Shown here: positions 19,524-59,119 of the stretch, in pieces | Layout of the letters: each line of letters starts with the position of its first letter | Position numbering within the stretch: position 1 is the first letter of the stretch | Assembly (NCBI GenBank): GCA_002269645.1 | Contig: NIVC01000055.1 | Span: forward strand, 1-64,000 | DNA length: 64,000 bases | Origin: Macrostomum lignano | Lineage: Eukaryota | Direction of reading: 5' to 3' | Made by a program: the position numbers and the translations under genes | The notes under the pieces: generated by a model | The model's input: only the letters and a program-made list of their open reading frames with translations | Told to the model about the DNA's origin: nothing | The model's database searches: none

Positions 19524-20015
19524 CTGTTTTTTTTACCTGAGACTCGGCTTATTGATAGAAATGTTGGAACTGTGCCAGGTGTAAAATGTTGCATAATTTG
19601 CCTAATTTATATACGCAGCTGCGGGTGTCTCATTTCCAGTGTTTCCTGCGCGAAGGTGGTTGACTTAAAAGTGGGAGAAAAATCTTAGACTTTTGTGGCT
19701 ATGTTTTTGCATGTCCCGCCTTTTATCTCAAAATTAGTGTTGTTAGCTAAGTGTATGGGTGCATAAGAAGTTCTGTTGCTTTTGAAAGCAGGCTAAAAGC
19801 TTCAGAGCTTTATACGAGCTCGCAAAATATGTGCATGCACAAATAGACTCCTTAGGACAGGTTCCAGTTGTATGTGGTTGCTATGCGGTGGATAATGGGA
19901 CGTTGCTGTGTGGTCGTTATGGCGTTTCTGACTTGTCAACAACATAGTCAAATCACGACGCCTGCAATCCCCTGCATTCTAGAAAAAAATATCCTACAAT
20001 GAGTCGGCTCGTTAC

Positions 20016-20255
20016 CAGGTGACGACTACTCGTCTTCCCATTTGCCGTGGGGGCAGTAGTGGCGGCTGACTGCTGATAGGCGCTGTGAAACTTCTCCTCC
20101 AGGTGGGTGCGCTTGCGAATCTCCTTGAAGATCCGGCCGTACAGAACATACATGATGGATAGTGGAATGTAGAAGTTTAACAGGCCGGTAACAATCTTTA
20201 GGGGAAAGTTCTCCTTGTACTCTGGATCGCACTGACTTTCTGGGATGTTGTAGAC
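20016..20255 (-). CDS. HRH1: Histamine H1-like GPCR, exon 4 (ECL2, TM5)
   Basis: Acceptor CGCAG|GTC, donor CTG|GTAACG. Encodes VYNIPESQCDPEYKENFPLKIVTGLLNFYIPLSIMYVLYGRIFKEIR. Only the 3' part appears in the ORF track. Confidence 0.9.
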
Positions 20256-20404
20256 CTGCGAGTGTTACAGGAGATCAAATTGCAAGTAAATCGTTAGTCA
20301 CACAGTCAGTTCAATTCGTCAGACCGTCCTGCGCTGTTTATAAACTTAAACTTGATGCTAATTGATTACTAAAATAATTTTTTGGCATTCAAACTGCTCC
20401 TTTG

Positions 20405-20620
20405 CACTGATTGGCTGGATCTTTCGTCACTCTCACTCCACTCTGTGTGACTTCCCCCGCGCCAGCATCGATTGGCTGGCTCTTGTTATCGCAACCTCAC
20501 TCCTCTCTGTGCGCTTTCCCCCTCGCCAGCACTGATTGGCTGGCTCTTGTTATCGCACCCTCACTCCACTCTGTGCGCCTTCCCTCTCGCCAGTACTGAT
20601 TTGCTGGCTCTTGTTACCCT
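20405..20620. repeat. About 4 degenerate copies of a 53-54-bp unit containing GATTGGCTGG
   Basis: Read directly in GPCR intron 3. Confidence 0.7.
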
Positions 20621-21174
20621 CACTCCATTGTTCCATAATCTAATGACCAAATATTTACTCTCCTTAGCGATTGCGACTCGTTTTCCAGCGTCGAATAAAG
20701 TAATCTTTATTAAAGGTCACAATATCGTCTTTAAATATTTTTAGATTCATATTACTTATAAAAGTAGCTAAATATATAGCAAGTCATTAAGCTAGATAAA
20801 CAAAATCAATTTGGCACAGTGAAAATTTTTTTCCCACTCGACCTTCTAAACGCTGCATGCAGCATTGTAAACAGACTTCAACCATCGTGCTGAGTTTTTC
20901 AGCTCGCTTAACTTTATACGCCGATGGGTTAAGTGGCCAAGAGGAGAAGGGATTCGAGAAAGGGAAATTGTAAATGTATTGCGAATGGGAGAGTAGAGGA
21001 GAACTGAGCACGATCTAAGAATCAGACGGGGAAGCCTTTTGTGAGCAGAATTTTTCTGCCTCTTCTGAAAGTTTAGTTTCTTCCATGCAATTATTAAAAT
21101 TCCCTGCACTGCACTGGCACTGGAGTTTTTAGTTTCACTACTGTCCTGTCTTGTCCTGTCTTTCCTAGAATCTT

Positions 21175-21585
21175 CACTGAAGCTGTCCTGTCTCCACTGA
21201 AGCTGTCCTGTCTCCACTGAAGCTGTCCTGTCTCCACTGAAGCTGTCCTGTCTCCACTGAAGCTGTCCTGTCTCCACTGAAGCTGTCCTGTCTCCACTGA
21301 AGCTGTCCTGTCTCCACTGAAGCTGTCCTGTCTTCACTGAAGCTGTCCTGTCTCCACTGAAGCTGTCCTGTCTCCACTGAAGCTGTCCTGTCTCCACTGA
21401 AGCTGTCCTGTCTTCACTGAAGCTGTCCTGTCTTCACTGAAGCTGTCCTGTCTCCACTGAAGCTGTCCTGTCTCCACTGAAGCTGTCCTGTCTCCACTGA
21501 AGCTGTCCTGTCTTCACTGAAGCTGTCCTGTCTTCACTGAAGCTGTCCTGTCTCCACTGAAGCTGTCCTGTCTCCACTGAAGCAG
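21175..21585. repeat. 20-bp minisatellite (CTCCACTGAAGCTGTCCTGT), about 20 copies
   Basis: Read directly in GPCR intron 3. Confidence 0.96.
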
Positions 21586-21951
21586 TCTTTTGAATCAGAA
21601 ATCGTGACTTTTCGAAGGTTTTCAAGCGCAATTTTTTCCTGCCATTCAACATCGCCATTGCAGTTTCATTTGGTTTTCAAGTTTTAATAAAATGAGAGAA
21701 TCAATCCTGCTGGAAAAACTATAAAGTAATTAGGTTTGTTAATAATTTTATGGCAGACTAATTATTAAATGCTGCTTGATAAAAAAGTCAAGCAGCCCAG
21801 GCCTAAAAAACATGGATCGAGAGTTGCACAAGAACTTCTTGCAGTTTTTATGCTTCCGTTCTGATGCTCCACGAGGGCGCTTGCACTCGACAAGCAGGTA
21901 AGAGACTTGGCCTTTAGTCCGAGACACTGAGCTGTAGGTGAGATCGGATGA

Positions 21952-22320
<369 letters not shown>

Positions 22321-22784
22321 AGGCACATGCAGCATCTTGTCCTCATCAAGTAAGGACAGGCATGAGTGCCCCCATAGTAATCTTGGTTGCTGAATTCAGT
22401 AGGCGCTGAGGTGCTTTGAGTTGCAGCGCCATTTTCCCAATTGGATTATTCCCCAGCTCCAGGCCGGGAAGCATCCCATGGGAGCATCAAGTTGGGATTC
22501 TGGGGCTTGAGTAAATTTTATCAGATCATCGCCGAAATCAATTTGAAAATGCAGGCAGAAGTGTGCAAGAAATTGATGGGCCCTGAGCTGATGAAGGAAG
22601 GCACGTATCTCCTGCCAGTTCTGTCCTTCATTCCAGTTAACTCAATCCCATTTCAAGTGCCGATATCTGGCGCTCACAAATGGAGCATTATCTTTTCGAA
22701 TGCAGTCTAAGTTTGTTGTGCCAGTAGGAGAGTAGTTTTTTTATATTGCAGCGTTCAACTTTACTGTCTATGACTTTGATCATA

Positions 22785-23330
22785 GACCCTTTCACTCTGA
22801 TCATAGACCCATTCACTCTGATCATAAACCCATTCACTCTGATCATAGACCCATTCACTCTGATCATAGACCCATTCACTCTGATCATAGACCCATTCAC
22901 TCTGATCATAGACCCATTCACTCTGATCATAGACCCTTTCACTCTGATCAAATAGACCCATTCACTCTGATCATAGACCCATTCACTCTGATCATAGACC
23001 CATTCACTCTGATCATAGACCCTTTCACTCTGATCATAGACCCATTCACTCTGATCATAGACCCATTCACTCTGATCATAGACCCATTCACTCTGATCAT
23101 AGACCCATTCACTCTGATCATAGACCCATTCACTCTGATCATAGACCCATTCACTCTGATCATCGACCCATTCATTCTGATCATAGACCCATTCACTCTG
23201 ATCATAGACCCATTCACTCTGATCATAGACCCATTCACTCTGATCATAGACTCATTCACTCTGATCATAGACCCATTCACTCTGATCATAGACTCATTCA
23301 CTCCGATCATAGACCCACTCACTCTGATCA
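22785..23330. repeat. 21-bp minisatellite (GATCATAGACCCATTCACTCT), about 26 copies
   Basis: Read directly; it starts about 20 nt inside the donor of GPCR intron 3. Confidence 0.96.
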
Positions 23331-23352
23331 CCACCCACGCTCGGTGACTCAC

Positions 23353-23590
23353 CCCTCCATTGGCGAAGGCGTGCCACCCAAGAATGGGAATAATCCACAG
23401 AGCGGATGCGAGCCAAACCAGGAAGATCATGACGCGAGCTCGAGTTTTGGTTCGCTGGTGCAAGTAGAGCAGAGGGCTGGACACGGACCAGTAGCGGTCC
23501 AGGCTGAGGATCAGCAGGTTCAGAATTGACGCGGTGCTGGCAGTGTAGTCCACAGCGAGCCACAGCTGGCACAGGGCTCTGCCGAATTTC
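23353..23590 (-). CDS. HRH1: Histamine H1-like GPCR, exon 3 (TM3, DRY, TM4)
   Basis: Acceptor CACAG|G completes the TG+G Trp codon. Encodes KFGRALCQLWLAVDYTASTASILNLLILSLDRYWSV...RTKTRA...WIIPILGW. Donor GGG|GTGAGT at 23352. Confidence 0.93.
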
Positions 23591-23619
23591 CTGTGCGGCA
23601 TGGTTTAGTGGTGTCCAAG

Positions 23620-26600
23620 AGGCTAGATTAGCAATCCATTCTATTCCTTCATCCTTAATGGTGTTGGCTAGATTAGCAATCCATTCTATTCCTTCATCCT
23701 CAATGGTGTTGGCTAGATTAGCAATCCATTCTATTCCTTCATCCTCAATGGTGTTGGCTAGATTAGCAATCCATTCTATTCCTTCATCCTCAATTGTGTT
23801 GGCTAGATTAGCAATCCATTCTATTCCTTCATCCTCAATGGTGTTGGCTAGATTAGCAATCCATTCTATTCCTTCATCCTTAATGGTGTTGGCTAGATTA
23901 GCAATCCATTCTATTCCTTCATCCTCAATGGTGTTGGCTAGATTAGCAATCCATTCTATTCCTTCATCCTCAATTGTGTTGGCTAGATTAGCAATCCATT
24001 CTATTCCTTCATCCTCAATGGTGTTGGCTAGATTAGCAATCCATTCTATTCCTTCATCCTTAATGGTGTTGGCTAGATTAGCAATCCATTCTATTCCTTC
24101 ATCCTCAATGGTTTTGGCTAGATTAGCAATCCATTCTATTCCTTCATCCTCAATGGTGTTGGCTAGATTAGCAAATCATTCTATTCCTTCATCCTCAATG
24201 GTTTTGGCTAGATTAGCAATCCATTCTATTCCTTCATCCTCAATGGTGTTGGCTAGATTAGCAATCCATTCTATTCCTTCATCCTCAATGGTGTTGGCTA
24301 GATTAGCAATCCATTCTATTCCTTCATCCTCAATGGTGTTGGCTAGATTAGCAATCCATTCTATTCCTTCATCCTCAATTGTGTTGGCTAGATTAGCAAT
24401 CCATTCTATTCCTTCATCCTCAATGGTGTTGGCTAGATTAGCAAATCATTCTATTCCTTCATCCTCAATGGTGTTGGCTAGATTAGCAATCCATTCTATT
24501 CCTTCATCCTCAATGGTGTTGGCTAGATTAGCAATCCATTCTATTCCTTCATCCTCAATTGTGTTGGCTAGATTAGCAATCCATTCTATTCCTTCATCCT
24601 CAATGGTGTTGGCTAGATTAGCAATCCATTCTATTCCTTCATCCTTAATGGTGTTGGCTAGATTAGCAATCCATTCTATTCCTTCATCCTCAATGGTGTT
24701 GGCTAGATTAGCAATCCATTCTATTCCTTCATCCTCAATTGTGTTGGCTAGATTAGCAATCCATTCTATTCCTTCATCCTCAATGGTGTTGGCTAGATTA
24801 GCAATCCATTCTATTCCTTCATCCTCAATGGTGTTGGCTAGATTAGCAATCCATTCTATTCCTTCATCCTTAATGGTGTTGGCTAGATTAGCAATCCATT
24901 CTATTCCTTCATCCTCAATGGTGTTGGCTAGATTAGCAATCCATTCTATTCCTTCATCCTCAATTGTGTTGGCTAGATTAGCAATCCATTCTATTCCTTC
25001 ATCCTCAATGGTGTTGGCTAGATTAGCAATCCATTCTATTCCTTCATCCTCAATGGTTTTGGCTAGATTAGCAATCCATTCTATTCCTTCATCCTCAATG
25101 GTGTTGGCTAGATTAGCAAATCATTCTATTCCTTCATCCTCAATGGTTTTGGCTAGATTAGCAATCCATTCTATTCCTTCATCCTCAATGGTGTTGGCTA
25201 GATTAGCAAATCATTCTATTCCCTCATCCTCAATGGTTTTGGCTAGATTAGCAATCCATTCTATTCCTTCATCCTCAATTGTGTTGGCTAGATTAGCAAT
25301 CCATTCTATTCCTTCATCCTCAATGGTGTTGGCTAGATTAGCAAATCATTCTATTCCCTCATCCTCAATGGTTTTGGCTAGATTAGCAATCCATTCTATT
25401 CCTTCATCCTCAATTGTGTTGGCTAGATTAGCAATCCATTCTATTCCTTCATCCTCAATGGTGTTGGCTAGATTAGCAATCCATTCTATTCCTTCATCCT
25501 CAATGGTGTTGGCTAGATTAGCAATCCATTCTATTCCTTCATCCTTAATGGTGTTGGCTAGATTAGCAATCCATTCTATTCCTTCATCCTCAATGGTGTT
25601 GGCTAGATTAGCAATCCATTCTATTCCTTCATCCTCAATTGTGTTGGCTAGATTAGCAATCCATTCTATTCCTTCATCCTCAATGGTGTTGGCTAGATTA
25701 GCAATCCATTCTATTCCTTCATCCTCAATGGTTTTGGCTAGATTAGCAATCCATTCTATTCCTTCATCCTCAATGGTGTTGGCTAGATTAGCAAATCATT
25801 CTATTCCTTCATCCTCAATGGTTTTGGCTAGATTAGCAATCCATTCTATTCCTTCATCCTCAATGGTGTTGGCTAGATTAGCAATCCATTCTATTCCTTC
25901 ATCCTCAATGGTGTTGGCTAGATTAGCAATCCATTCTATTCCTTCATCCTCAATGGTTTTGGCTAGATTAGCAATCCATTCTATTCCTTCATCCTCAATG
26001 GTGTTGGCTAGATTAGCAATCCATTCTATTCCTTCATCCTCAATGGTTTTGGCTAGATTAGCAATCCATTCTATTCCTTCATCCTCAATGGTGTTGGCTA
26101 GATTAGCAAATCATTCTATTCCCTCATCCTCAATGGTTTTGGCTAGATTAGCAATCCATTCTATTCCTTCATCCTCAATGGTGTTGGCTAGATTAGCAAT
26201 CCATTCTATTCCTTCATCCTCAATGGTGTTGGCTAGATTAGCAAATCATTCTATTCCCTCATCCTCAATGGTTTTGGCTAGATTAGCAATCCATTCTATT
26301 TTTTCATCCTCAATGGTGTTGGCTAGATTAGCAAATCATTCTATTCCTTCATCCTCAATGGTGTTGGCTAGATTAGCAATCCATTCTATTCCTTCATCCT
26401 CAATGGTGTTGGCTAGATTAGCAAATCATTCTATTCCCTCATCCTCAATGGTGTTGGCTAGATTAGCAAATCATTCTATTCCCTCATCCTCAATGGTTTT
26501 GGCTAGATTAGCAATCCATTCTATTCCTTCATCCTCAATGGTGTTGGCTAGATTAGCAATCCATTCTATTCCTTCATCCTCAATGGTGTTGGCTAGATTA

Positions 26601-27155
26601 GCAATCCATTCTATTCCTTCATCCTCAATGGTTTTGGCTAGATTAGCAAATCATTCTATTCCTTCATCCTCAATGGTGTTGGCTAGATTAGCAAATCATT
26701 CTATTCCTTCATCCTCAATTGTGTTGGCTAGATTAGCAATCCATTCTATTCCTTCATCCTCAATGGTGTTGGCTAGATTAGCAAATCATTCTATTCCCTC
26801 ATCCTCAATGGTGTTGGCTAGATTAGCAAATCATTCTATTCCCTCATCCTCAATGGTTTTGGCTAGATTAGCAATCCATTCTATTCCTTCATCCTCAATG
26901 GTGTTGGCTAGATTAGCAATCCATTCTATTCCTTCATCCTCAATGGTGTTGGCTAGATTAGCAATCCATTCTATTCCTTCATCCTCAATGGTTTTGGCTA
27001 GATTAGCAATCCATTCTATTCCTTCATCCTCAATGGTGTTGGCTAGATTAGCAATCCATTCTATTCCTTCATCCTCAATGGTTTTGGCTAGATTAGCAAT
27101 CCATTCTATTCCTTCATCCTCAATGGTGTTGGCTAGATTAGCAATCCATTCTATT
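23620..27155. repeat. 42-bp satellite (GGCTAGATTAGCAATCCATTCTATTCCTTCATCCTCAATGGTGTT-type), about 84 copies, 3.5 kb
   Basis: Read directly in GPCR intron 2; it produces the spurious 1231-aa ORF. Confidence 0.97.
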
Positions 27156-27367
27156 TTTTCAGTACACCATGAACTATCTACTATGTACTTTAACAAAAAC
27201 AAGAAGTGGCATTTTCACTGAAAGACATGAACTGCAGGGGTCTCTAAAGTGGCTCAGCAGGGGCAGGCAGCTCAAGCAGCATTAATTTAATAAAACTTGC
27301 TCTGAAATTTAAGCCGAAGGCTTCGAAGACTTGACTTTTTGATGAGAAATACGGCACAGTGCAGAGC

Positions 27368-27785
27368 CACAGTCAGTGCCATTCTCCCATCTGTCAGTGC
27401 CATTCTCCTATCTGTCAGTGCCATTCTCCCATCTGTCAGTGCCATTCTCCCATCTATCAGTGCCATTCTCTCATCTATCAGTGCCACTCTCTTATCTATC
27501 AGTGCCATTCTCCCATCTATCAATGCCATTCTCCTATCTATCAATGCCATTCTCCCATCTATCAGTGCCATTCTCTTATCTATCAGTGCCATTCTCTCAT
27601 CTATCAGTCCCATTCTCTTATCTATCAGTGCCATTCTCTCATCTATCAGTGCCATTCTCTTATCTATCAGTGCCATTCTCTTATCTATCAGTGCCATTCT
27701 CTTATCTATCAGTGCCATTCTCTTATCTATCAGTGCCATTCTCTTATCTATCAGTGCCATTCTCTTATCTATCAGTGCCATTCTC
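27368..27785. repeat. 21-bp minisatellite (ATCAGTGCCATTCTCTTATCT), about 20 copies
   Basis: Read directly; it starts about 65 nt inside the donor of GPCR intron 2. Confidence 0.95.
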
Positions 27786-27851
27786 CGCACCGAACTCTGC
27801 GGGGCCGCTCCCCAACTCATGAAGCGCAATAAATCATAACCCCGCACTGAC

Positions 27852-27949
27852 CAGCTGTCGGACAGCACGTACACAGCGGATATCGGCATGACAAAAGTGC
27901 CAACCGTGAGATCGGCCGCGGCCAGAGACACAATGAACATGTTGCACAC
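27852..27949 (-). CDS. HRH1: Histamine H1-like GPCR, exon 2 (TM2)
   Basis: Acceptor CAACAG|GTG; encodes VCNMFIVSLAAADLTVGTFVMPISAVYVLSDS; phase-2 donor TG|GTCAGT. Confidence 0.92.
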
Positions 27950-28124
27950 CTGTTGATAAATCAATTTAGGGTCAATAATTTCAGGCAATAAAAGTTATAA
28001 ATTTATTAGCTTCTATACTAAACTGTTGACTGCTTAAGACAATGAAACTCATTTTAAATCAAGCATTGACTTGTCATACAACTCACCATTAGTCATATAC
28101 TCACTGTTGATGGCCATACACAAA

Positions 28125-28505
28125 TTGTTGGTCATCGACCTACTGTTGGTCATAGACTCACTGTTGGTCATAGACTCACTGTTGGTCATAGACTCACTTT
28201 TGGTCATAGACTCACTGTTGGTCATAGACTCACTGTTGGTCATAGACTCACTGTTGGTCATAGACTCACTGTTGGTCATAGACTCACTGTTGGTCATAGA
28301 CTCACTTTTGGTCATAGACTCACTGTTGGTCATAGACTCACTGTTGGTCATAGACTCACTGTTGGTCATAGACTCACTGTTGGTCATAGACTCACTGTTG
28401 GTCATAGACTCACTGTTGGTCATAGACTCACTTTTGGTCATAGACTCACTATTGGTCATAGACTCACTGTTGGTCATAGACTCACTGTTGGTCATAGACT
28501 CACTG
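28125..28505. repeat. 18-bp minisatellite (GTCATAGACTCACTGTTG), about 21 copies
   Basis: Read directly in GPCR intron 1. Confidence 0.96.
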
Positions 28506-29132
28506 TAGTTCATACCTATGGGCTGCCAAGCAACATACCATATCGTTTCTTACCATTTTTATCTGTGCACTTTAATACCCCCGAGCCAGGCACTCTCTGA
28601 TCTGCCGCGGGTCAAGACCATTGGATATTTATACTCACAGCACCTCCCCTCCCAGAAGCAGAGACTATGCAAATGGCTTCCACTGGAACAGAGCAGCTCT
28701 CTTTGATGCCGCGGCTTCCTGACTCAGGATGTGGCCAGGAGATTGCTAATTTCATATTTCTCCTGTCAGCCCCGCTCCTCTTCCGCCTCAATCTTGTTGC
28801 CAAGCTAAAATTAGCAATTCTGCTTTCTCTCAAAGACAGACATCAGCGATTCTGCTTCCGACTCTAGGAACCGCTGGTCGACATTTTGCTGACAAAGAAA
28901 AACTGCCAAACAGGCATTGCTGGCTTTGCTCTGCCATAACGAATTTAAGAATAAAGTATAAGAACACTGAAGAGTGGTAGAGGAGGAAGTTAAAAAAAAT
29001 TTCCGGATTCTTTACCATGGGAAAAACTGTTTAACCGACAAACATCCTGTACCGCAGTTATGCTCGTAAACAAATTTAAAACAATTTGATTAGTAAAAAC
29101 ATTGATAAAAATATTGATAATAGAATAACAAG

Positions 29133-29610
<478 letters not shown>

Positions 29611-30149
29611 CGGGCAGACAGGCATAATACGCTCGTACAATGCCCCCCGGCCATCCCCAAAGAAAAGAAGGAACTGTCAATCACTTTTCTCTCCGTTTCA
29701 TTCCCGATATTTTCACGAAAATTTCCGATATGAAATTTGAAACCAGAATCTCGGGCACACAAACAATCAAGTGTTATTCTATCACAGCGGCGCATCTCTC
29801 GGTCGCATCTGTCTCACTGCAGTCCAACAGAGCAGCAAACTGAAGCTCCGCAGCTGCAGGCCAGAAGTTCATGTTCTTCTTGGCGAGAAACTACTGCCGA
29901 AGCATTCTTATGTTTACAAGGCCTGATTACTCATGCAAATTTAGTCGGCGCATGACATCCCCCCTAGATTAGCGTGTGTCAAGTTGTGGTTGGCTCAAGC
30001 AAACAGTTGGTCTGGATAGCAGCTGACTTGTTGCATGTTTGAAGGCTGAGTAAACAGGGATTTGGGACCAGAGACTGATTGAGACCCGAGTACTGTAGGA
30101 GGTAGACTGACGGGATTCGAGATGTAGTGCATGTGGGCTGAGAAGTTAG

Positions 30150-30380
30150 TGCACGGGTTGGATGTGGTCTGAGAAGTAGGGCTCGGGGTGGATGTGGGCT
30201 GAGAAGTTAGTGCACGGGTTGGATGTGGGCTGAGAAGTAGGGCTCGGGGTGGATGTGGGCTGAGAAGTAGGGCACGGGTTGGATGTGGGCTGAGAAGTAG
30301 GGCTCGGGGTGGATGTGGGCTGAGAAGTAGGGCACGGGTTGGATGTGGGCTGAGAAGTAGGGCTCGGGGTGGATGTGGGC
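30150..30380. repeat. 30-bp minisatellite with two alternating variants (60-bp dimer)
   Basis: GGGTGGATGTGGGCTGAGAAGTAGGGCTCG alternates with a GGGCACGGGTT variant; it begins about 40 nt inside the donor of GPCR intron 1. Confidence 0.9.
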
Positions 30381-30418
30381 TGCTAAGGTATTTAGAGGCT
30401 CCAGCCGCCCGCACTCAC

Positions 30419-30580
30419 AGTCTGCAGTCGTTTCTCCGTCCGAACGGCGTGCAGCACCATGGCGTTGCCGAGGCAGGTTGCCAGGCTCACTGTGCTCAGC
30501 AGCAGGCCAAGGAACACCCGGCTGACAACGGCGCCGGATAGCGGCGCCTCCCAACTGGAGTTTTGGGTCGAGTTCGACAT
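30419..30580 (-). CDS. HRH1: Histamine H1-like GPCR, exon 1 (N-terminus, TM1); the full model is about 490 aa
   Basis: MSNSTQNSSW (two N-glycosylation sequons)...LGNAMVLHAVRTEKRLQT resembles H1R NLLVLYAVRSERKLHT. Donor ACT|GTGAGT at 30418. All five exons join in phase (162+98+238+240+735 nt). Confidence 0.9.
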
Positions 30581-31254
30581 CTTCGGATGCAGACAGAAAT
30601 GACGCGTTCGTCATTAAACGTCATTCTGCTAATCATATTTAAGTCGGCGTTCCTGCAAGCTTTCGATGCAGCACTCGAGAAATTTCTATTGGCCTTGAAG
30701 CTGGAAGCCGTGCCATTGGCCAGCTGATAAGGTAGGGCTTTTTAATTGAAGTAATGGTTCGATGTCTAACATAAATTAATTGCAAAAAATGCTCCCCAGG
30801 AGTACCGCTTGCTTGAAACAACACGTGCATGCATAGATTGGCTTCATCTATACTTCATCTGATTTAGAAATGCAGCCAGGTACGCACGAACACCGAGATG
30901 GAACTGGCTGAGACTACAATTAGACTGCGGATCTGACGATGAATGATTATTCCCGAAAAATGTGTTGAAAGAGAGGCAGGGCATTCCGAAACATCTGCCG
31001 ATTTCCGATGCTCAGCAATCGGTGCGGCTGAGTCTGACTGAGTTCTGACTGTTGACATTCCGCCATCATTGCCCCGACTGAGAGAGAAGCCCCTTCGTCA
31101 ATGTTTCTGTTGAGAAGCTCTGTGGCTTCCCAAAACACTCTTCTTGGGCTGATCTGCACTGGCAATCATGCACTTCCCTCGTGCCCATGCATCCTATATG
31201 AATGAATTAAACCTAATCAGTCCATTTTGTAAGCTACTAGCTACTAGCTTATTC

Positions 31255-40905: not shown

Positions 40906-41165
40906 NNNNNNNNNNNNNNNNNNNNNNNNNNNNNNNNNNNNNNNNNNNNNNNNNNNNNNNNNNNNNNNNNNNNNNNNNNNNNNNNNNNNNNNNNNNNNNN
41001 NNNNNNNNNNNNNNNNNNNNNNNNNNNNNNNNNNNNNNNNNNNNNNNNNNNNNNNNNNNNNNNNNNNNNNNNNNNNNNNNNNNNNNNNNNNNNNNNNNNN
41101 NNNNNNNNNNNNNNNNNNNNNNNNNNNNNNNNNNNNNNNNNNNNNNNNNNNNNNNNNNNNNNNNN
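40906..41165. other. Assembly gap (260 N)
   Basis: Run of n. Confidence 1.
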
Positions 41166-41720: not shown

Positions 41721-42380
41721 GATGTTCCTATAATTCAAATGGCTTTGCGAAATTGACTGCTTGTAGGGTAAATCGATTGGACAGATAAACAACTTTGGCC
41801 ATAGAACCCAGAGAAATTGACTGGGCAATGCTATAATAGTATAACTTTTGCTAGCAAAACAGTGTTTTCCATGTCCTACAAATAATTGTCGTTAAGTCAA
41901 TCTGACAGTATTCCGCAGCCAGACCAATTCACGGCTTCCAGGTGTTTGATGTCGACGGTCTGGACATGGACATTTTCGAAGTGCCCAGGTTCAGAGCTTC
42001 AGAGCGGATCTCGGCGTGGTTGTGAAACTGAATCAGATTAATTGCATTCAAGAAAACTTGTTCTTAAAATGCGGAAACGAGTTCATTTTACAGTGTAATC
42101 GGTTGGCCCCTCTAGATTCCGCTGTATACGGTGCTGTTACATCCAGGAACGCAACACGCGGTTTGCGTTTCTGTTGCTGCCGCAGACGATCACAGTCGAT
42201 TTTCTCTATTGTTACTAACTTTTTCAAGCTGCTGACAATAATCTTCGATGAAGGAAGGTATTTTGTAAAAAACGTGAACAATTTGATAGAAGCAAACGGC
42301 TGAGTACATTGGCGTGCTAATATAACAGAACAAATGGTCAATTTGGATCGAAGTTTATTTTAACTGTTAGTCTCAATCTA

Positions 42381-43016
42381 CACTCAGCAACATTTAAAAG
42401 TGCCCCCCAACCTTGCGCCAAGGGTTCATGGGCAGCACGATCGATGGTTTCGCCAATTGGTTTTGGGCCATAGACAAATGAGCAAAAAAAGGCACGAAAG
42501 TAAAGACCGATATCTGGTGTCACAGGGAAAAGCGTTACAGTAACGCGTGTACAGGAGTTAACTGGAGGCATCTGGACGCAGGTGACTGATGGCGTACTTT
42601 GCGTTGGCCGTCCAGACCACCGGATATGAACCCGATTGAGCACGTGTGGGATTTCCTGAAGCGCACGATTAGTTGCAACAATCTCTATCCCCCCAGAACA
42701 GGGTCCAGCTGCGCAATGCGCTTTCAGTCGCGTGGCAACAGCTTCCACAAGACTTTCTGCGGCGCCTTTTTCGGGAATGCCTCGACGAGTAAGCGGTCTG
42801 TTGGACGCTCGCGGTTGTTATCTATACCTGTTACTGACTGTGCTTTAGACACGTACACGGCGTGGAAATTGGCATGGACTTGTTTCGCTGTTCATTCTTT
42901 GTTGCCTTATTTTGATTGTCTATGGCCCAAACATAGTTAAAAACCTTTCAATCCCTAATCGTTCAGCTAGTGTAGCCTTTTGTGCAGACGTGGACACTTT
43001 TCAATGTTGCTGAGTG
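42381..43016 (+). mobile_element. Internally deleted Tc1 element, 636 bp
   Basis: TIRs CACTCAGCAACATTTAAAAGTG / CACTTTTCAATGTTGCTGAGTG with TA flanks (42379-80, 43017-18). It encodes the transposase C-terminus WPSRPPDMNPIEHVWDFLKR...GMPRRVSGLLDARG. Confidence 0.88.
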
Positions 43017-44183
43017 TAACTAACTACTGTTTACCTATACTGGATAAATTAAGCGTGCAGTTTTGAAACGTACCATTGAAGTTCACCATTGAAGTCGATT
43101 GAAACCAAGTCGCAGCCCTGTCCATCTGCTTTGCAGAAGACTTGAAAAATTCTTCTTGTTCAAGCTGTCTCAGGCCTCAGCTCATTCATTTTCGTCCGGC
43201 TTTTCTTCCTTCAAAGTCTTCGAGTAAAACAGCTGCTTAGCTCTTCCAGATAACGGCTTGCTGGTTCAGAAATAACCCACTCAGCTCTTCTGTTAATAAG
43301 CCGGAGATCAGTTTGGTCAGGCGGATTACTTAGGTTCAACATTTTCTAGACTTGGCAAAACTCTGTATTTTCCCTCCCCGGATTAAAGTGAACAAGTATT
43401 TCTCTCTCACTTTCCTCTCATGAACTTTCGTCTATGGCTCAACTCTCTACCCATCAGCGAATCAAAAACAGACGTTGACCTTAGACAGTATTTATTAGAA
43501 ATGTGCTCGTTGTCTATGGCCCAAACCCACAACTTTATCATATAGGATTTCAACGCTGGATGTCTGATTTCTAATTTGTCTGACAAAAGCTGTACCCAAT
43601 ACCCTTTGACCACAAATACGAGCTACCTCATAATGCAGCACCTGTACGATCAGCAAAATGTACTTTTATTCACCTAGTATCATTTGAGAAGCAACTCAGC
43701 AAGCCTATCGAGCTCATTTCTTTAAAGCTGAAAATTTTTGTTGATCTGAGACGAATTATTTTTTAAGACAATGCTGCGAGCGCAGAAACTTGAGAGTCTC
43801 TTGAAAGAAACGAATAAGAATGCTAGATTTTTTCCATTTCGCTGAGTTGAAATTCTAATCCAAGTCTTGGCATTTTTTGGTAACCGATTGAAACTGCCAA
43901 GAATTGATGAGAGAATTTGATACTCGTGAGATGGCGCATGGTCTTAGATTGTCTGGAATTGCCCGACTGAATCTGGGTTTTTAGTCTGGCAATTGAGTTG
44001 CCATACAGTGCTAAACTAATCTCATCAGGTTTCACAGAAAAAACCAAGTTGACCTGATGGAGCGTTTAGACTTTAGAGTCACCCGATTGGCATCCAGTAT
44101 AAACAAACATTTGAGCGTGTTCTCTAAGAAATCGGACAAAATGGATCTGGATAAACCGGAACAGGACAAACCGGAAATTACAG

Positions 44184-44752: not shown

Positions 44753-45560
44753 GCCGGATCTGGATAAACCGGTTTCCAGATTTGATGATTGCTAATCCAG
44801 AAATTTCTACTTTGGAAAGTGAAGAATTCTGTTAATCAACAAATTTTCCACACGATGCATAAGAATAGAGTAACTATAATGATATTCAGAAGTTCAATTC
44901 AGAGTACAGCTCAACTCGCAGACTGCTTTATCTTCGATGCAACAATAAAGAAATTGAAAAAAAACTGATTAAGTACGCTACGTATTTCTTGTCAAAGTAA
45001 ATTTGTTTTTTGCTTTTGAGCTTACGAAACGGCAAACACTGGACGCTGGACATATATGACTCGGCTAGAGAAATATCCTCGAATCTCAGATTTCTTCCTT
45101 TCAATCACTCATTGAAATCCGCTTTGATCCGTTGGACTTCCTGCTTGGAGAGCGGCCGCTGCTCCAAGTCTTTCCTGAACCGGGCATTTCTAGGAAAGCG
45201 GGGTTTGAGAAACTAATCAGATCGCATCAGGTCAGAAGCTAAGAGTGTGTAATTAAACTTGAGAAAATTGATGCAGAAATTGAATTGTTATAATCGTGGG
45301 GGCGGCTCTTTTTTTCTCGCCCTATGTCTTTGCACTTTAACTGAGATCAGGCAGTACGTATTAACACGTTCGCGAAGCTGCGTTGATTTTGCAAGATTAG
45401 TGCGGGACAAACTCATCTCAAAGCTGTGAGAAACATCAAATATATTTTTTTCCAACCAAAACGGTTTTACTACAGTCCGAACTCGGTAAAGCATGCGATA
45501 AAAATAGGGAACTGGACACAGAGAATGTGATTTATTAGCCGAGCTGTTCTTGAAAATTAG

Positions 45561-45566
45561 TTTATT
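45561..45566 (-). terminator. Candidate polyadenylation signal (AATAAA) of the peptide precursor gene
   Basis: TTTATT on the + strand, about 130 nt downstream of the stop. Confidence 0.4.
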
Positions 45567-45697: not shown

Positions 45698-46267
45698 TTA
45701 GGCGCGTTTGTAACGGTCGTTGTTCTCGAAGAACTTCTTGTAACGGTCGTTGTTCTCGAAGAACTTCTTGTAACGGTCGTTGTTCTCAAGAAATTTCTTG
45801 AAGCGGTCGTTGTTCTCGAAGAACTTCTTGAAGCGGTCGTTGTTCTCGAAGAACTTCTTGTAACGGTCGTTGTTCTCAAGAAATTTCTTGAAGCGGTCGT
45901 TGTTCTCGAAGAACTTCTTGAAGCGGTCGTTGTTCTCGAAGAACTTCTTGTAACGGTCATGCCTGTCTAGAAACTTTTTGAAGCGGTCGTTGGCGCCAAA
46001 GAACTTCTTGTAGCGGTCGTTAGCGCCAAAGAACTTCTTGTAGCGGTCGTTGGCTCCAAAGAACTTCTTGTAGCGGTCGTTGGCGCCAAAGAACTTCTTG
46101 AAACGGTCGCCGCCGAAGAATCGCTTGTTGTCTTGGTGCTCATGGTGGGGGTGCTCAACAGCATGGGAGTCGCTGGGAGCGGCGTCTGCCATGACGGTAG
46201 CTGCCACGGTTAGTAGCAGAAGCCCGGAGGCCAGCAAGCGAATGGATCCGCAGCACGAAACCGGCAT
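45698..46267 (-). CDS. Secreted multi-peptide (neuropeptide-like) precursor, 189 aa, single coding exon
   Basis: Signal-peptide-like MPVSCCGSIRLLASGLLLLTVAATVMA, a His/acidic spacer, then 14 peptides separated by KK/KR: FFGGDRF, FFGANDRY x3, FFGANDRF, FLDRHDRY, FFENNDRF x4, FLENNDRY x2, FFENNDRY x2. The ORF-track start at 46297 is a TTG; the first ATG is at 46267. Confidence 0.88.
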   Translation of the reverse strand: MPVSCCGSIRLLASGLLLLTVAATVMADAAPSDSHAVEHPHHEHQDNKRFFGGDRFKKFFGANDRYKKFFGANDRYKKFFGANDRYKKFFGANDRFKKFLDRHDRYKKFFENNDRFKKFFENNDRFKKFLENNDRYKKFFENNDRFKKFFENNDRFKKFLENNDRYKKFFENNDRYKKFFENNDRYKRA

Positions 46268-46370
46268 CTTTGCTGTAGCAGTCGCAGCTCTCTGCAATGT
46301 CTTGAAAAATTTGACGATAATATGTTTTGCAGTCGGTGAGCAGCGGATGAGCTTTAGACGGAGGCGGCAG

Positions 46371-46377
46371 TTATATA
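46371..46377 (-). promoter_or_regulatory. TATA box (TATATAA) upstream of the peptide precursor
   Basis: CTATATAAC on the minus strand, about 105 nt upstream of the ATG. Confidence 0.5.
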
Positions 46378-48824
46378 GACGCTATACCACCCCCCCCCCC
46401 CTAGTAACGTCCTCATCCCTACGCATGCCATTCTCACATTCCTATTGGCTGCAGGCAGGCGGCGGGCTTTGGTAAATGAAAGGAAATCAAGCTAGCTAAC
46501 GGAGAGCAAATCCCACCTCCGCAGAATCGGAGCTGCTTCAGGCCTTAATGAATCGTCAGCAGAGCTCGCATCGCATGTTCCGACTCGTAATTAGACAAAA
46601 TCAACTGGAGACAACTAGTGAATGCTTCGAACAGAAGAAATTGGCTGCTGCAGACGAGCCGAAACAGAATGGAAGCATAGCCTTTTAGGACGCTTTCTGG
46701 CTAGCTTGTACTAGCTGGAACATGGCTGACGCTGGCATTGATTACTCATATCTCAACATGGCTCACTATACTTCATACATTTAATGGAATGCATGCAAAT
46801 GGTGCATGGAGTACAATTTTTGCGCACTGTATCTTATTTCTGATAGCGCACGTTCCGATTCGAACTCATTTCTCTGAACGAGGGTCCAACAAAGCGAGCC
46901 TGGTTCGTTCAGTGCGCATCCAATTAGACATAAAATTGGTTTACGCTGTGCAGAAGCCCGCCCTTCATTTGCAATTTAGGGATCAGAAAAAGAAGCGATA
47001 TCTTTGTACTCTGCGACGATTCATGTCTCCTAGCGCACACTGACAGCCTGCGCTCTACAAATTAACTCTCAGATTTTAGGAAATCAAGGATATCAAATAT
47101 CAGATTTAAAAATTATGCTAATGTCAAAAATTCGTCAGGAATAGCCCCTTGAAAGGACAATAAACCCCTCACGGAATATTTTCTCCAGTAGAGGGAAGCA
47201 AGCAGCAAATAGACATGGGAGTCAGTGCTGCTGCAGATTCGCTCAGCTGGATCATCTGGCCGAGGCACTCAAGGGTGAAATGCTCAGTAACTTCCGAACT
47301 CTTATTGTACCTGATTAACTCTTTCGAAAGTTTTATTAATAATTCTGTGAGGCAACCAGGTTTTCCGGTCCATCTATTGTTGCAGGCTCGTATTTTTGCT
47401 CACGCAAATCATGCTGGTCCACTTGTCAGGCAAACTCAATTTTGATTGAGACTAAACACACCAGCTGGTTAATTAACATCTTACTCTCTGAAGCCTTGAC
47501 ATTGAGGTGGCCTTGTAGGCCTCACTGATTAGGCTGTAGGAGGTGGACTATTGTTTGTTCGACTCACAAAACAGAAATTTCAGTAAAAATGCGGCAAAGT
47601 AATCTGCAAAGCTTTTCAAGAGCGTCTGGAGCTGCACGGAGTCCAGTGCCCGCGATCGGCTCAAGTTGTTGAGCGGCCTGCCGCCGGGAGCCCCGTGAAA
47701 CTTGATGACCGCAGGAGTAGAACGGCCGGCTGCGCTACCGGATCAAATTCGCCGTACTGCTCGCCACTCTGAATGCACACAGGGCGGTAGGTCGGAAAAT
47801 TCACTGCTGAATTAAAATGCAAATGAGGCGACGCACTTTCGGATCGACAGAATTGCGCCAGTCTCTTGAGACTGCAGTTTGAGACGAAGGATAAACTCGC
47901 TTTTTTGTGTGCCGTCATTGCTGGAAAATCAAGCACGGAAGGACTGACTGCTCGGGGATCGTTTCAAGACACCGCGACCTCGGTCCTCAGGCTTTGTTGG
48001 GCTGTTGCGACTGCTTGATCACGGGAGCTTATTTATTAGAAAAATCGCACAGGGAAGGAGAACTGCTCCGTTGAGTAGCTGAGACGAGAGAAGAAAGAAG
48101 ATGGAGAGTTCACTTAACTCGCCCTAAGGCGGTTTCTCGCAACCGGAGTTAGAAAAGTCGAAGTTTACCAGCTTTTCCATTCCCCTCCCCCGACCAGTCT
48201 TCCCTTCTGCGGGAGGCAAGACCAGCTGAAAAAGGCTGTCGAGTCGGTTGTTCTAGAATCAAGTCGAAGGGTTTATATCCTTGAGCAAGCACTCTAATGC
48301 TCGAATCGAATGCTGCTACAAGGACGCTGAAGGCGATTCGACGCTGCAGGCTGTCCAGTCGCTCCCCTCTGGGGACTATTAAATAATGCCTGCATCGAGT
48401 TCCAGACTCATCTGAGCCCCCTCTCTGCCTCCATCCTCGCCGCACTTCTGCTAGTTAGTTCAGTGACCGCTTGCATTTTAAAATACTGCGTAAGCTCCAA
48501 CTGGTGACATGACAGGCACGGCACGCATACATCGCGTATAAGATGAGCGCGACAACATTGATGAGCTTCTTCTGAATTGATTTCATCAAACCGTAGCTCA
48601 TCCTCAAACTATCCTCATCGCGTAGCAGCTTAATATGGTGACGTCAGCATGTTCTGTAGCTCAGTTTGCAACTAATCGTACCGTGTCGAAAAAAGAAAAT
48701 CCTAATACAAAAAAGCAATTTTTATTGTAAAATATTGTGTCGAAGGCATATCTACAAGGAAATAGTTCGTGTAACTAGCAAGGAAAGGAGTAACATTTTT
48801 TTTATAAACTACATGTATGCTAGC

Positions 48825-55384: not shown

Positions 55385-55430
<46 letters not shown>

Positions 55431-56433
55431 TATACCAGATGTAATTCTGTGCACTTCCATCTCTCTTTCACCCAGTGCTAGAACCTCATGGCCGCTCCAG
55501 GCTTACACCAGAGGTCTAATAGGCCTTCAAGGTCGAGCTCTACTCTCTTGCTCCTGGTGGCATGGCACTCCAATAGGTGACTGCTACTTTCTTCCTCTTC
55601 GTTGCATAGCCTGCAGCGGGCATTGTTCTGCTTTCCAATCCTCATCCGATACTGATTTAGTTCTAATGAGTGGCCGGCTCGAAATCTCCTGAAGCTGACA
55701 GCTTCGCTGCGGCTGCTGCTTTCTTCCTTCCACTGCTCCCTTAGTCCCTTGCTATATGTCTCTCCGCTGCAGTGGTGCCTCCACTTCCACTCTCTAGTGA
55801 TATTCCGCATCACGGTCTGTTTCACCGGGTTGGCAAGCATGCCTGCCGGTTCTAGCACCCCATCCACCACCTCCTTGGCCACTGTGTCCATCTCCTTGTT
55901 GCCAGCCAAGCCACAGTGGGCCGGCACTAGCACAGCAAGATCACAGTGCCCATCTCACTGGCCATCTGCAGATTGCTGATGATACTGTCCACTATCGGGT
56001 TGGCCTTGCCGTTTTCTATAAGTTGGAAGCTACTCTTATTGTCTGTGGCGACACAGATGGTCTTGCTCTCACCCTGGTCTCGGATCCAGACAGACGTGGC
56101 CAATAGCGCTCTCAACTCAGCTTGGAGCAAGCTGCAGGACTTGCCAGCATTAACTTTGATGTTAGTTGTAGTGCTCCAGCCTACCAAGCTTCTGGTAGTC
56201 ACAATGGCCCCGCCCCCACCTTTGCCAACTTCGCTGATGGATCCATCCGTGTAGATGATGACATCAGCCTCTGCCACCTTCTCATCTAAGATATCTCCCG
56301 CAAGCTCCTTATTCTCCGCCGCAGTGCCTTTGCGGTACCCTTCCAAGCTGATCTCAAAGCCTCTTTTTGTCCATGGGGGCGATCTGCACCACAGCCCATC
56401 TTCTTCCACCATCACATCCAGCATTCCATTCAT
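55385..56433 (-). mobile_element. 5'-truncated non-LTR retrotransposon (RNase H plus C-terminal CCHC-type finger), (AC)n tail
   Basis: IIYTDGSI...QAELRAL...VATDNKS...(fs)VPAHCGLAGNKEMDTVAK...CRLCNEEEESSSHLLEC; (TG)n at 55385-55424. Confidence 0.88.
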
Positions 56434-56441
56434 GCTGCTGC

Positions 56442-56443
<2 letters not shown>

Positions 56444-56475
<32 letters not shown>

Positions 56476-56950
56476 GCCAGATCAAGCTGTGCCTATGCCA
56501 TTCCTCTTCCACCACTTCCAGAAGGTGTGCGCCGCTTTCTCCTCCGTCTACCAGTCACCAAGAGTCTAGATGCCCAACTCCTGTCTTTTCTAGAAGGTGG
56601 CCAAGTGGTCACTGACATGCTCGTTGCTTTCCTCTTCAAGCCCACAGCCTCTGCAGATGCCATCCATTTCTTTGCCAAGGCTTTTCCTGTAGCTTGCTAG
56701 TTTGAGTGAGTGGCTAGTTCTAGCTCTCCTGAAGCTGGTGGCATCTCCTCTGCTTTCAAAGGTGGTCTTCTTAATGGTTGTTTGGTTGCCACTGTAGGTC
56801 CTTTCACAGCGTGGGTGTGCCCATCTAGCTTTTTTAGCTTTCTCAGCTTCTGCCACCTTGATCGCCTGACGCACAGCGCTCTTGCCCACCCTTGCCTCTT
56901 GCTGGTCCTCCTCGCAGGCTGCCGCAGCCACCTTGTCTGCTGTTGTCGCT
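56444..56950 (-). mobile_element. Second 5'-truncated copy of a related LINE, (CAA)n tail
   Basis: ADKVAAAAC (end of RNase H)...FRRARTSHSLKLASYRKSLG...CRGCGLEEESNEHV; (TTG)n at 56444-56476. Confidence 0.8.
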
Positions 56951-59119
56951 GTCTGTATGCAAACTAGGGAATGTGGCCAAGGTGCAAGCATTGGAGCAGG
57001 AATGCATGGATTGACAACTCACCAATGCAATACTGTGCCCAGTATTGCTCCACACTCATCTGCAGATGCTCGTACTGTGCTCTGTGCTGGCACTCCTGAG
57101 CACCCTAGTGCACTAGTGTGGCATGCACTGGCACAAGCTTGGCCTCCATGTGCAGCAGGTGCAGGAGTGGGTAGAGTATCAACTGCACTCTCTTGGCCTG
57201 CTGCTTGAGTCTCTGGTGCCAGCCCTTGACCTTGTTGTTGGTATACATATTGATTGGCAGTACACACTGACTTTGTGGACTCCGTTGACCAGGTTTAACA
57301 GCCAGGTTGCGCTCATGTACTCAGCCAGGTCTAGCAGGAGCGCCGCGTGCCAGTGCAAACTGGAGGTCAACTGGAGGCTGCGGGTGCCCAACCTCACAAG
57401 ACCAATTGGCGATGCGCACCAGCTGATTGATTGGGCTAATGTTCCCGGTCTCTAGCAACTTTGCCTCCACGATTGCTGCAGCCAATCTAAAGCAGTGCTG
57501 CTTTGCATCCTCCTTGATCTCGGCAACCAATTGGAGCTTCATTCCCTCACGCACTTGTGGTTTGCAGATGTGAGCCGCTTGGCTACTTCAAACGTTGCCC
57601 TGACTGTCTTCAATGGCAGAAGCCGGGCACTTCAACCTAGAATTGCGTTGGGTGTAGCACCAATAGTGACCATTATTCTTTTTGACATTCTGCCCCAATA
57701 CATATTCTCAAGCTTTAATGCATTGAATAAGTGACGGCTTTTGCTTCTTGGTGCCCTTGCAAACGATGACAAATTCCTCTAGATCACTGGGCCTCATTGA
57801 TTTTTGTGGTGAATTCAGAAGTAGTGAAAGAAAATGGAAAGTGTGAATGATTCTTGCCTTTATAGCAGCATGCTTGCTGCATATGTATACAAATTAATAG
57901 AGAATATTCTGGAAAGTCTAGAAGTTTCTGGAATAGTACCCGATAATAACAAAAAAGTAGTAAGCCAATATGATCTGCATTAGTTGATGTACATGTTATG
58001 ACATTTGCAAACTGTAGCTAGCCAGTTGACAAAGTAACTAATATTCTCAGGCCCTTTTGTCAACTGACTAATGAACCAATCTAAAACCTTGGTCATTTTG
58101 TCAACTGCAAGTGAGACCACCTTAAAATGTTGGTCAATTTGTCAACCAATTTGACAAACTGGCAGTTGACAAAATGACTAGCACCCCATCAAAGTTGTCA
58201 TAGGAATCTTCTTTCCTTTATTTATTTATCTTGGCTAAGGGCTATTGCCTCTAACATATTCAAGATATCCTGTTGTTTACCTTATAGGGCTTATTTATTT
58301 AGGTAAGATTAGGCTCAAACCTATTAATACATAGACTACCTCCTATGCAATGCTGGGATACTTAATATTGCCAATGGGACAGGCTTTATCTACTCTCAAG
58401 CTCATACATGCGCAACCTCCTTGGTTTATACTGGCTATGCAACTTACTTTTTGACCAAAAATATGACTTATTTGTAAAAGAAACCCTAAAGCAAAAATTA
58501 ACCTAATTTTGGATAAACAGGAAAAGCAACTATGACTGTCTTATTAAGATTAAATGCTTTGTAATCTAGTTAGTACTATGTCTGTATTCTTTTGGGTAGG
58601 CATTTTTGCAACTTACCCTTGGTCTACTACAATTTAAGTTAAAAAGCAACATTTAAAAAAATATAAGGTCGGCCATAATTTTTATATATGTTAGGCCTGG
58701 TAGAATCACCTTAGAAATAACAGATTTCATTAGATAAGCATGGATATAACAAATAAAGAATTTAGCAAGTAGAGCTTTATCCTACACTGCTTGAATAGAA
58801 AAGTAGAAGAAATTGTCAGAGCATTCTTAGAGATTTGAAAGCATCTAATATTGCTTTATGAGACACAGGTGTTCTCAACTTATATATTATGCTTTTTGCA
58901 TTTGTCTATATTCATACATGCGCAACTGCTGGCCGACCTGGCCGATCCGGCCACCGTAAATCGTGGCTGACCAGGGGTAAGTCGCAAAATTGAGTCAACC
59001 AAAAACCGAAAAACACAAGAACCAAGAAAGGCAAGAGGAAAGCGAAAGAAAGAGCAGTTCAGGGAAAATGGTGAAGCAAAAGAAAAACAATTCGCAAAAG
59101 AAGCAAGCTAAGTTGTAAA

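Follow-up and report, generated by a model that had tools for sequence, protein, structure and literature searches.

A candidate lineage-restricted prepropeptide gene encoding multi-copy FFxxxDR[F/Y] peptides in the flatworm Macrostomum lignano

Positions 1 to 64000 of contig NIVC01000055.1 from the Macrostomum lignano genome (assembly GCA_002269645.1), referred to below as the window, were analysed; window and contig numbering coincide. On the minus strand, an open reading frame (ORF) at 46267..45698 (570 nt, 189 codons plus TAA, one exon and no intron) encodes a small protein made up largely of 14 short peptides bounded by pairs of basic residues. Judged from the DNA sequence, it is probably a lineage-restricted prepropeptide gene of M. 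lignano, a neuropeptide or peptide-hormone precursor processed by prohormone convertases, with peptides that are most likely neuronal or neurosecretory. The kind of gene is ordinary; the peptide sequence is what is new. M. lignano is a flatworm model with working transgenesis, and if the gene is real it provides a highly multi-copy unannotated precursor and an orphan ligand with which receptors could be deorphanised and behaviour, regeneration or reproduction studied.

The precursor and its peptides

The predicted protein consists, in order, of MPVSCCGSIRLLASGLLLLTVAATVMA, the spacer DAAPSDSHAVEHPHHEHQDN, KR-FFGGDRF, thirteen 10-codon units of the form KK-F[FL]xxxDR[FY] and a terminal KR-A-stop. 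Its N-terminus (MPVSCCGSIRLLASGLLLLTVAATVMA, followed by DA) resembles a signal peptide, with a single Arg in its n-region, 16 uncharged residues as hydrophobic core, V at position -3 and A at position -1. The call was made with a crude rule of our own, which fires on 16 of the 140 ATG-initiated ORFs of the window (11% background). An earlier interpretation of the letters alone (the sequence-only reading) had described a compact gene with a TATA box, a signal peptide, the spacer as quoted above, 14 peptides bounded by KR or KK and an AATAAA word; every one of these elements was found, on the minus strand, the strand having been left unstated.

The number of peptides is exactly 14, with the consensus F-[FL]-x(2-3)-D-R-[FY] and seven distinct sequences: FFGGDRF (one copy), FFGANDRY (three), FFGANDRF (one), FLDRHDRY (one), FFENNDRF (four), FLENNDRY (two) and FFENNDRY (two). 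The proposed two sequence classes correspond to the GAN units (four) and the ENN units (eight), with two odd units besides, FFGGDRF and FLDRHDRY. The four GAN units are separated by two synonymous changes and one non-synonymous change. The ENN class contains an exact duplication of a 90-nt, three-unit block (FFENNDRF, FFENNDRF, FLENNDRY), after which FFENNDRY occurs twice.

Fifteen basic pairs are present, KR at the first and last positions and KK at all 13 internal junctions. Arg occupies P4 in all 14 pairs that come after a peptide (R-[FY]-K-K, and R-Y-K-R for the last). A basic residue at P4 favours convertase cleavage, and the terminal R-Y-K-R fits R-x-K-R, the furin-type consensus. When the whole protein was checked, no Gly was found ahead of any basic pair (G[KR][KR] count zero), in agreement with the sequence-only reading; the peptides would be free acids, because peptidylglycine alpha-amidating monooxygenase needs a C-terminal Gly.

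With the signal peptide removed, the 162-residue protein has a net charge of +17, a composition of 19% Phe, 17% Lys and 5% Tyr, and a 10-residue period. The pro-protein past the signal peptide contains zero Cys. Structure prediction with AlphaFold2 gave no confident fold (pLDDT 52, pTM 0.22), a result that fits a precursor and is not diagnostic.

Evidence for a protein-coding gene

The window is dense in tandem arrays (61 rows reported by Tandem Repeats Finder, TRF). At least one stop-free frame was found in 13 of the 22 arrays examined, so minisatellites with an open frame are no exception here. Substitutions between units were counted on a minimum spanning tree over the nine distinct unit sequences and evaluated by a binomial test with an expected synonymous fraction of 0.167. 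In the coding frame, 15 differences were synonymous and 13 non-synonymous (p=9e-6); with a transition/transversion ratio kappa of 3 the excess was still present (p=1.4e-3). The pN/pS ratio was 0.07 in the framework codons (K, K, F, F/L, D, R, F/Y), compared with 0.61 in the three core codons, and framework replacements were limited to K to R, F to or from L, and F to or from Y. Among open frames the synonymous excess was confined to the coding frame; one stop-containing antisense frame mimics it, as expected on geometric grounds. The sole length difference among the units, a 3-nt deletion in FFGGDRF, is in-frame. The pattern is one of purifying selection at the protein level: the basic pair and both peptide ends, F-[FL] at the N-terminus and D-R-[FY] at the C-terminus, are constrained, and the core of two or three residues is freer.

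As a control, six other in-frame minisatellites of the window were treated in the same way in all 36 frames, giving a lowest p value of 0.009. Weak synonymous excesses were seen in the arrays at 65-551 (27-bp unit, frame +0, QGLAMSRIP...; p=0.019) and 27373-27785 (frame +1; p=0.009), and are compatible with multiple testing.

Codon usage was assessed by GC content at third codon positions (GC3) and by an index of the codon adaptation index (CAI) type, built from the two annotated single-exon neighbours, CD36 (GC3 0.75) and GST (GC3 0.82). The precursor has a GC3 of 0.79 and a CAI-like index of 0.69; among 109 background ATG ORFs the GC3 was 0.535±0.135, and 3.7% reached the values of the precursor. 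The non-repetitive N-terminal 47 codons have a GC3 of 0.68. A stop-to-stop scan with the codon index picked up the known ion-channel, GST, CD36 and G-protein-coupled receptor (GPCR) exons, and between 31 and 64 kb the precursor ORF was the only strongly codon-biased ORF recovered.

The substitution pattern and the codon usage exceed chance, unlike the open frame, the signal-peptide rule and the TATA and AATAAA words. The sequence-only reading had recognized the classic multi-copy propeptide layout of a secreted protein, and the tests strengthen it in that they make a real compact gene very probable. That the ORF is a protein-coding gene under constraint is, on the present sequence analysis, a conclusion in which we would place high confidence.

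Absence from the deposited annotation

The GenBank annotation has no gene model at the precursor locus. The protein database that was searched includes the GenBank proteome of this assembly (e.g. BOX15_Mlig025211g2), and an exact-protein look-up returned no record for the precursor. The deposited M. lignano annotation left out transcripts overlapping repeat annotations, including TRF tandem repeats (PMC5730564), and this is why the precursor is unannotated. About 70% of its coding sequence (CDS) is a TRF array; the missing model is therefore silent on transcription.

Tandem-repeat masking before annotation can thus hide genes whose coding sequence is itself a repeat. Multi-copy prohormone genes are tandem repeats by construction, and the repeat filter may therefore have removed a whole class of peptide-signalling genes. 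The frame-by-frame balance of synonymous and non-synonymous differences between units offers a simple way to tell such genes from non-coding minisatellites.

Searches for relatives

Comparison with Pfam gave sub-threshold noise only, and FARP was not among the matches even at E<=10. A word-indexed search of 5.8 billion protein clusters returned 28 word-sharing candidates, zero of them significant, and an exhaustive phmmer search of 1.84 billion representatives returned 93 matches, of which the 11 inspected (including the two best and the short ones) were unrelated repeat-on-repeat alignments. Overall, no homologue of the precursor was found in about 15 billion proteins. Neither the back-translated peptide words nor a degenerate two-unit DNA pattern (DR[FY]KKF...DR[FY]KK) matched the JGI metagenome contigs. 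In the searchable literature, the peptide strings gave irrelevant matches only (e.g. 'LigandRFs'), and no published account of the M. lignano neuropeptide repertoire was found. The planarian and schistosome prohormone supplements contain no DR[FY]-K[KR] motif and no DRF or DRY peptides (PMC2953531).

The view that the consensus belongs to no named family is borne out by Pfam, the protein and metagenome collections and the literature alike, and the FFxxxDR[FY] peptide family appears to be undescribed as far as the searched databases and papers show. Its standing as an undescribed signalling system was overstated: the peptide family is without a match, but free-acid peptides ending in F or Y and orphan prohormones are already known in flatworms (PMC2953531). 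Orphan prohormones are indeed common there, with 19 'spp' genes in S. mediterranea (PMC2953531). No current concept is challenged, orphan, lineage-specific, non-amidated neuropeptide precursors being already known in flatworms.

A protein of 131 residues (P0053), which surfaced through its repeat architecture, appears to be a multi-copy precursor of amidated neuropeptides (RYSEFLG-G-KK, five copies; YSEFLG-type) with no relation to the gene described here.

Comparison with known peptide systems

In overall architecture the precursor resembles the planarian secreted peptide prohormone Smed-SPP-15 and its predicted counterpart in schistosomes, Sma/Sja-NPP-26, which likewise have a signal peptide, a short spacer and short abutting peptides with only a basic pair between them. 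In these proteins of the same phylum, as here, the peptides have 6-8 residues, an aromatic residue beside an acidic one near the N-terminus and a C-terminal F or Y. The schistosome npp-26 was predicted to yield five free-acid peptides of the [S/N/E]xFDPI[L]F/Y type, separated only by KR (PMC2953531); like those of the precursor, they are without an amidation Gly. The motifs differ, being FDPI[QL]F in SPP-15/NPP-26 and FFxxxDR[FY] here, and FDPI occurs in 0 of the 14 precursor peptides. Furthermore, the sites are KR in SPP-15/NPP-26 and mostly KK in the precursor, SPP-15 is amidated, the copy number of the precursor is higher (14), and homology is not detectable.

The triclad SPP-12, or Dugesia 'neuropeptide-49' (NYMDFFGLNGDMQRF-KK-...), resembles the precursor in having KK after a free acid that ends in RF, and Arg at P4 of that site. 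SPP-12 and FFGANDRF-KK have residues in common in the order F-F-G-[LA]-N-(x)-D-(xx)-R-F-K-K, in an alignment that needs two gaps. Pairwise BLASTP of the precursor against SPP-12 gave E=0.13, which is not significant. A search with SPP-12 found three triclad proteins only, among which the NYMDFFGLNGDMQRF peptide is invariant, and no M. lignano protein. SPP-12 carries a single 15-residue copy in a precursor of 70-79 residues, in contrast to 14 copies of 8 residues here, and the signal and spacer regions of the two show no similarity. The resemblance, seen at the level of sequence, may serve as a lead; it is not demonstrated kinship.

Multiple copies and Arg-Phe or Arg-Tyr ends are also found in the FMRFamide-like peptides (FLPs/FaRPs) and in RYamide/luqin, and FFGGDRF even fits the FFxxxR[FY] of the arthropod FFxxxRYamide. 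The FMRFamide-like and RYamide/luqin families are, however, defined by a C-terminal amide, whereas the precursor has no Gly at any basic pair. RYamide/luqin precursors have one or two peptides and a conserved Cys-containing C-terminal part, in contrast to the 14 copies and the lack of such a part here. Since the defining amidation signal was tested for and is absent, the precursor belongs to neither family: an FMRFamide-like identity was rejected for want of RF-Gly-(basic) and of a Pfam FARP match, and a RYamide/luqin identity for want of the amidation Gly, given also the 14 copies and the absence of Cys past the signal peptide.

The orcokinin/pedal peptides (e.g. NFDEIDRSGFGFN) are, like those of the precursor, non-amidated and multi-copy with dibasic separators. 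Their N-terminal x-F-[DE]-x-x-D-R recalls F-F-E-N-N-D-R, in which only three or four residues are alike. Orcokinin/pedal peptides are 13-20 residues long and have a conserved hydrophobic C-terminal half of the G-F type; this identity was rejected because the precursor peptides are 7-8 residues long and end right after D-R-[FY]. Planarians carry separate pedal-peptide-like genes, ppp-1 and ppp-2 (PMC2953531).

What was found matches the generic multi-copy prohormone class: a signal peptide (by the heuristic rule), short repeated peptides with basic sites in a small non-globular protein, and constraint on both motif and sites (from one array). A broader proposal, which we hold tentatively and at slightly less than even confidence, is that the precursor founds a family of free-acid FFxxxDR[F/Y] neuropeptides that is specific to Macrostomum or to flatworms, has a receptor of its own and is possibly a multi-copy offshoot of the SPP-12 lineage, and that the precursor exposes an annotation blind spot for multi-copy prohormones.

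Proposed processing and alternative explanations

In the proposed pathway, the gene would be transcribed from its TATA promoter and the product would enter the endoplasmic reticulum (ER) co-translationally, the signal peptide being removed after Ala27. The precursor would be sorted to regulated secretory granules; a PC2-type prohormone convertase would cut on the C-terminal side of KR48-49, of each R-[FY]-K-K and of the final R-Y-K-R, and a carboxypeptidase E-type enzyme would trim the C-terminal Lys or Arg. With no C-terminal Gly, peptidylglycine alpha-amidating monooxygenase would be unable to act. The expected products would be the 14 free-acid peptides, of seven distinct sequences, and the acidic His-rich spacer as a peptide of 20 residues. 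Calculated [M+H]+ values are 845.394, 973.453, 989.448, 1070.490, 1088.480, 1104.474 and 1121.549 for the seven sequences and 2229.929 for the spacer. Neurons or neurosecretory cells would most likely release these products, which would act on a receptor.

In S. mediterranea SPP-12 (...DMQRF-KK-QQFF...), the free acid NYMDFFGLNGDMQRF was identified by tandem mass spectrometry and the downstream peptide pQQFFRNHRPEIEWN was likewise detected (PMC2953531). Because both were detected, cleavage and trimming of an R-F-K-K junction do occur in a flatworm, and the product is a free acid ending in RF. Cleavage at KK before F is known from SPP-13 (PMC2953531), and SPP-15 has the contiguous layout of peptide, basic pair and peptide (FDPIQFG-KR, eight copies; PMC2953531). 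The SPP-12, SPP-13 and SPP-15 genes are all expressed in the brain and nerve cords (PMC2953531), and the PC2 homologue of M. lignano is expressed in the nervous system and is essential (PMC4490696).

Several points weigh against a convertase-processed neuropeptide precursor. The evidence for selection all comes from one array, the units of which are not independent lineages, and minisatellites with open frames are exceptionally abundant in the window. The signal-peptide call is heuristic, at its 11% background rate. Of the 15 sites here, 13 are KK, in general the dibasic pair that is used with the least efficiency. As a whole, the protein is a Phe/Lys-rich decapeptide polymer with a charge of +17 that could work uncleaved, and expression, cleavage and signalling are all predicted from genomic sequence. 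Expression and peptidomics, not sequence, would separate the neuropeptide reading from the two alternatives considered first below.

The same processed peptides could come instead from a non-neuronal gland (prostate or seminal, cement, pharyngeal or epidermal) and work outside the body: they might be pheromones, act as an allohormone in the mating partner, or belong to a defensive or digestive secretion. In planarians, expression of prohormone genes extends beyond the central nervous system to pharynx, adhesive glands and sub-epidermal cells (PMC2953531). The sequence features that point to a processed, secreted propeptide would all hold for such a product just as well, the lack of a detectable homologue is as expected of fast-evolving reproductive and secretory proteins, and the last site is of the furin type (R-Y-K-R). 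We nevertheless regard a gland origin as unlikely. The 13 internal sites have Lys at P1 and would be poorly cut by the furin-type convertases of the constitutive pathway, and conserved termini on short, multi-copy peptides are a feature most typical of neuropeptides. In addition, the only documented PC2 homologue of M. lignano is expressed specifically in the nervous system (PMC4490696).

The protein might also be secreted and remain uncleaved, as a cationic Phe/Tyr/Lys decapeptide polymer acting through cation-pi or charge interactions in an adhesive, cement, eggshell, rhabdite or mucus. Such a role would suit the charge of +17, the content of Phe (19%), Lys (17%) and Tyr (5%), the strict 10-residue period and the His-rich N-terminal segment, and purifying selection on K, F and Y would be expected there too. 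Marine adhesive proteins typically have Lys/aromatic decapeptide repeats, and adhesive and cement glands are prominent in M. lignano. What makes this explanation quite unlikely is the form of the repeat: every unit boundary is exactly dibasic with Arg at P4, KR stands at both ends of the array and a lone Ala follows, features that make obvious sense in a propeptide and for which a polymer would have no need. Phe exceeds Tyr, a poor fit to DOPA (dihydroxyphenylalanine)/quinone-tanned flatworm eggshell or adhesive proteins, and 162 residues are few for a structural protein, the known adhesive proteins of M. lignano having thousands. An R-F-K-K junction identical to those of the precursor is, moreover, cleaved in planarian SPP-12 (PMC2953531).

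That the locus is non-functional, whether as a 30-bp minisatellite with one frame open by chance, next to an ATG and a hydrophobic run that are themselves accidental, or as a gene relic that is dead or was never transcribed, would agree with the open frames in 13 of 22 window arrays, the lack of a GenBank model and of any similar database protein, the exact 90-bp block duplication (ordinary minisatellite dynamics) and the commonness of the promoter and poly(A) words, but it is very unlikely in view of a frame-confined synonymous excess (p=9e-6 to 1e-3) absent from the six control arrays, codon usage that is gene-like and unlike that of 96% of background ORFs, the N-terminal 47 codons included, a sole length change that is in-frame, a stop directly after the array and a missing annotation that the repeat filter accounts for (PMC5730564).

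Gene layout and genomic neighbourhood

The features of the locus are listed in Table 1. Zero ATG triplets occur between TATATAA and the start codon, i.e. translation would begin at the first AUG. Alternatively, spliced-leader (SL) trans-splicing could use a polypyrimidine-AG sequence (tttttcaag, about 46311-46303) as its acceptor. The window has a background of about 0.7 TATAWA and about 0.7 AATAAA words per kb per strand, and since TATAWA is so frequent the TATA box adds little weight. A scan of the window for sigma-70 promoters and terminators found nothing; the models are bacterial and not apt for a eukaryote.

Table 1. Features of the precursor locus in window coordinates.
Feature	Position	Strand	Basis or remark
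CDS, complete, single-exon	45698..46267	-	ATG at 46267, TAA at 45700-45698, A at -3 of ATG
CCAAT, putative promoter element, 181 nt 5' of ATG	46444..46448	-	Sequence match only
TATATAA, putative TATA box, 110 nt 5' of ATG	46371..46377	-	Sequence match
Predicted 5' untranslated region	46268..46345	-	5' end placed about 30 nt past the TATA box
Predicted signal peptide, residues 1-27, cut between VMA and DA	46187..46267	-	Heuristic rule
Acidic His-rich spacer DAAPSDSHAVEHPHHEHQDN, residues 28-47	46127..46186	-	Side-chain charge -5, 5 His
First unit, KR-FFGGDRF	46100..46126	-	Sole 7-residue peptide; in-frame 3-nt deletion
GAN class, KK-FFGANDRY (three) and KK-FFGANDRF (one)	45980..46099	-	Unit comparison
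Divergent unit, KK-FLDRHDRY	45950..45979	-	Core altered; KK, F and DRY retained
ENN class, 8 units	45710..45949	-	Unit comparison and TRF
Terminal KR-Ala-stop	45698..45709	-	Last site R-Y-K-R, followed by A
AATAAA, putative poly(A) signal, 131 nt past stop	45561..45566	-	Sequence match
Second AATAAA, 161 nt past stop	45531..45536	-	Sequence match

No annotated gene lies within 10 kb of the precursor. About 32 kb away, an intronless gene at 13114-14862 (+) encodes a 582-residue CD36/LIMP-2-like protein and is present on three contigs of the assembly. The protein is identical on NIVC01000055.1 and NIVC01004234.1, and the third copy, on NIVC01000052.1, belongs to a homeologous copy of the locus whose DNA in the CD36 region is about 91-98% identical per aligned block (mostly 94-97%); the three copies illustrate the redundancy or neopolyploidy of the DV1 genome.

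A rhodopsin-family GPCR of the aminergic type, 18789-30610 (-), appears to span about 12 kb. Exon 1 (30395-30610) encodes the N-terminus and transmembrane segment TM1, TM2 lies in an exon at about 27.85-27.99 kb, and the last exon occupies 18789-19520. In the deposited model only the 3' 275 residues are present, from TM5 on. Minisatellites fill the introns, and the ORF of the TM2 exon runs on through one 21-bp array. This receptor was rejected as a linked peptide receptor because its best PDB matches are histamine H1, 5-HT1A and dopamine receptors.

Carriage of the precursor on a mobile element was likewise rejected, flanking terminal repeats being absent. Elsewhere in the window, a small element at 42379-43018 has 27-nt terminal inverted repeats (93% complementary) around a DDE_3/Tc1-mariner transposase fragment, and RNase H and zf-RVT fragments of a retroelement were found at 55400-57000. 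A run of 260 N at 40906-41165 represents a scaffold gap; in the minus-strand sense of the precursor gene it lies 4.5 kb downstream.

The last exons of a Kv-type potassium channel gene were located at 1674-2018 and 4309-4764 (+); the sister-contig model has BTB_2 and Ion_trans. They are separated by, and partly ORF-continuous with, 30-bp minisatellites (arrays 2399-3109 and 3766-4330). The array at 2399-3109 and that at 23621-27155, 20 kb apart, have in common a 17-nt core, GCTAGATTAGCAATCCA, with 85 exact copies in total. Their unit lengths differ: one has units of 30, 69 and 129 bp, and the other is built from 78 copies of a 45-bp unit over 3.5 kb. The two look like one satellite family evolving different higher-order periods.

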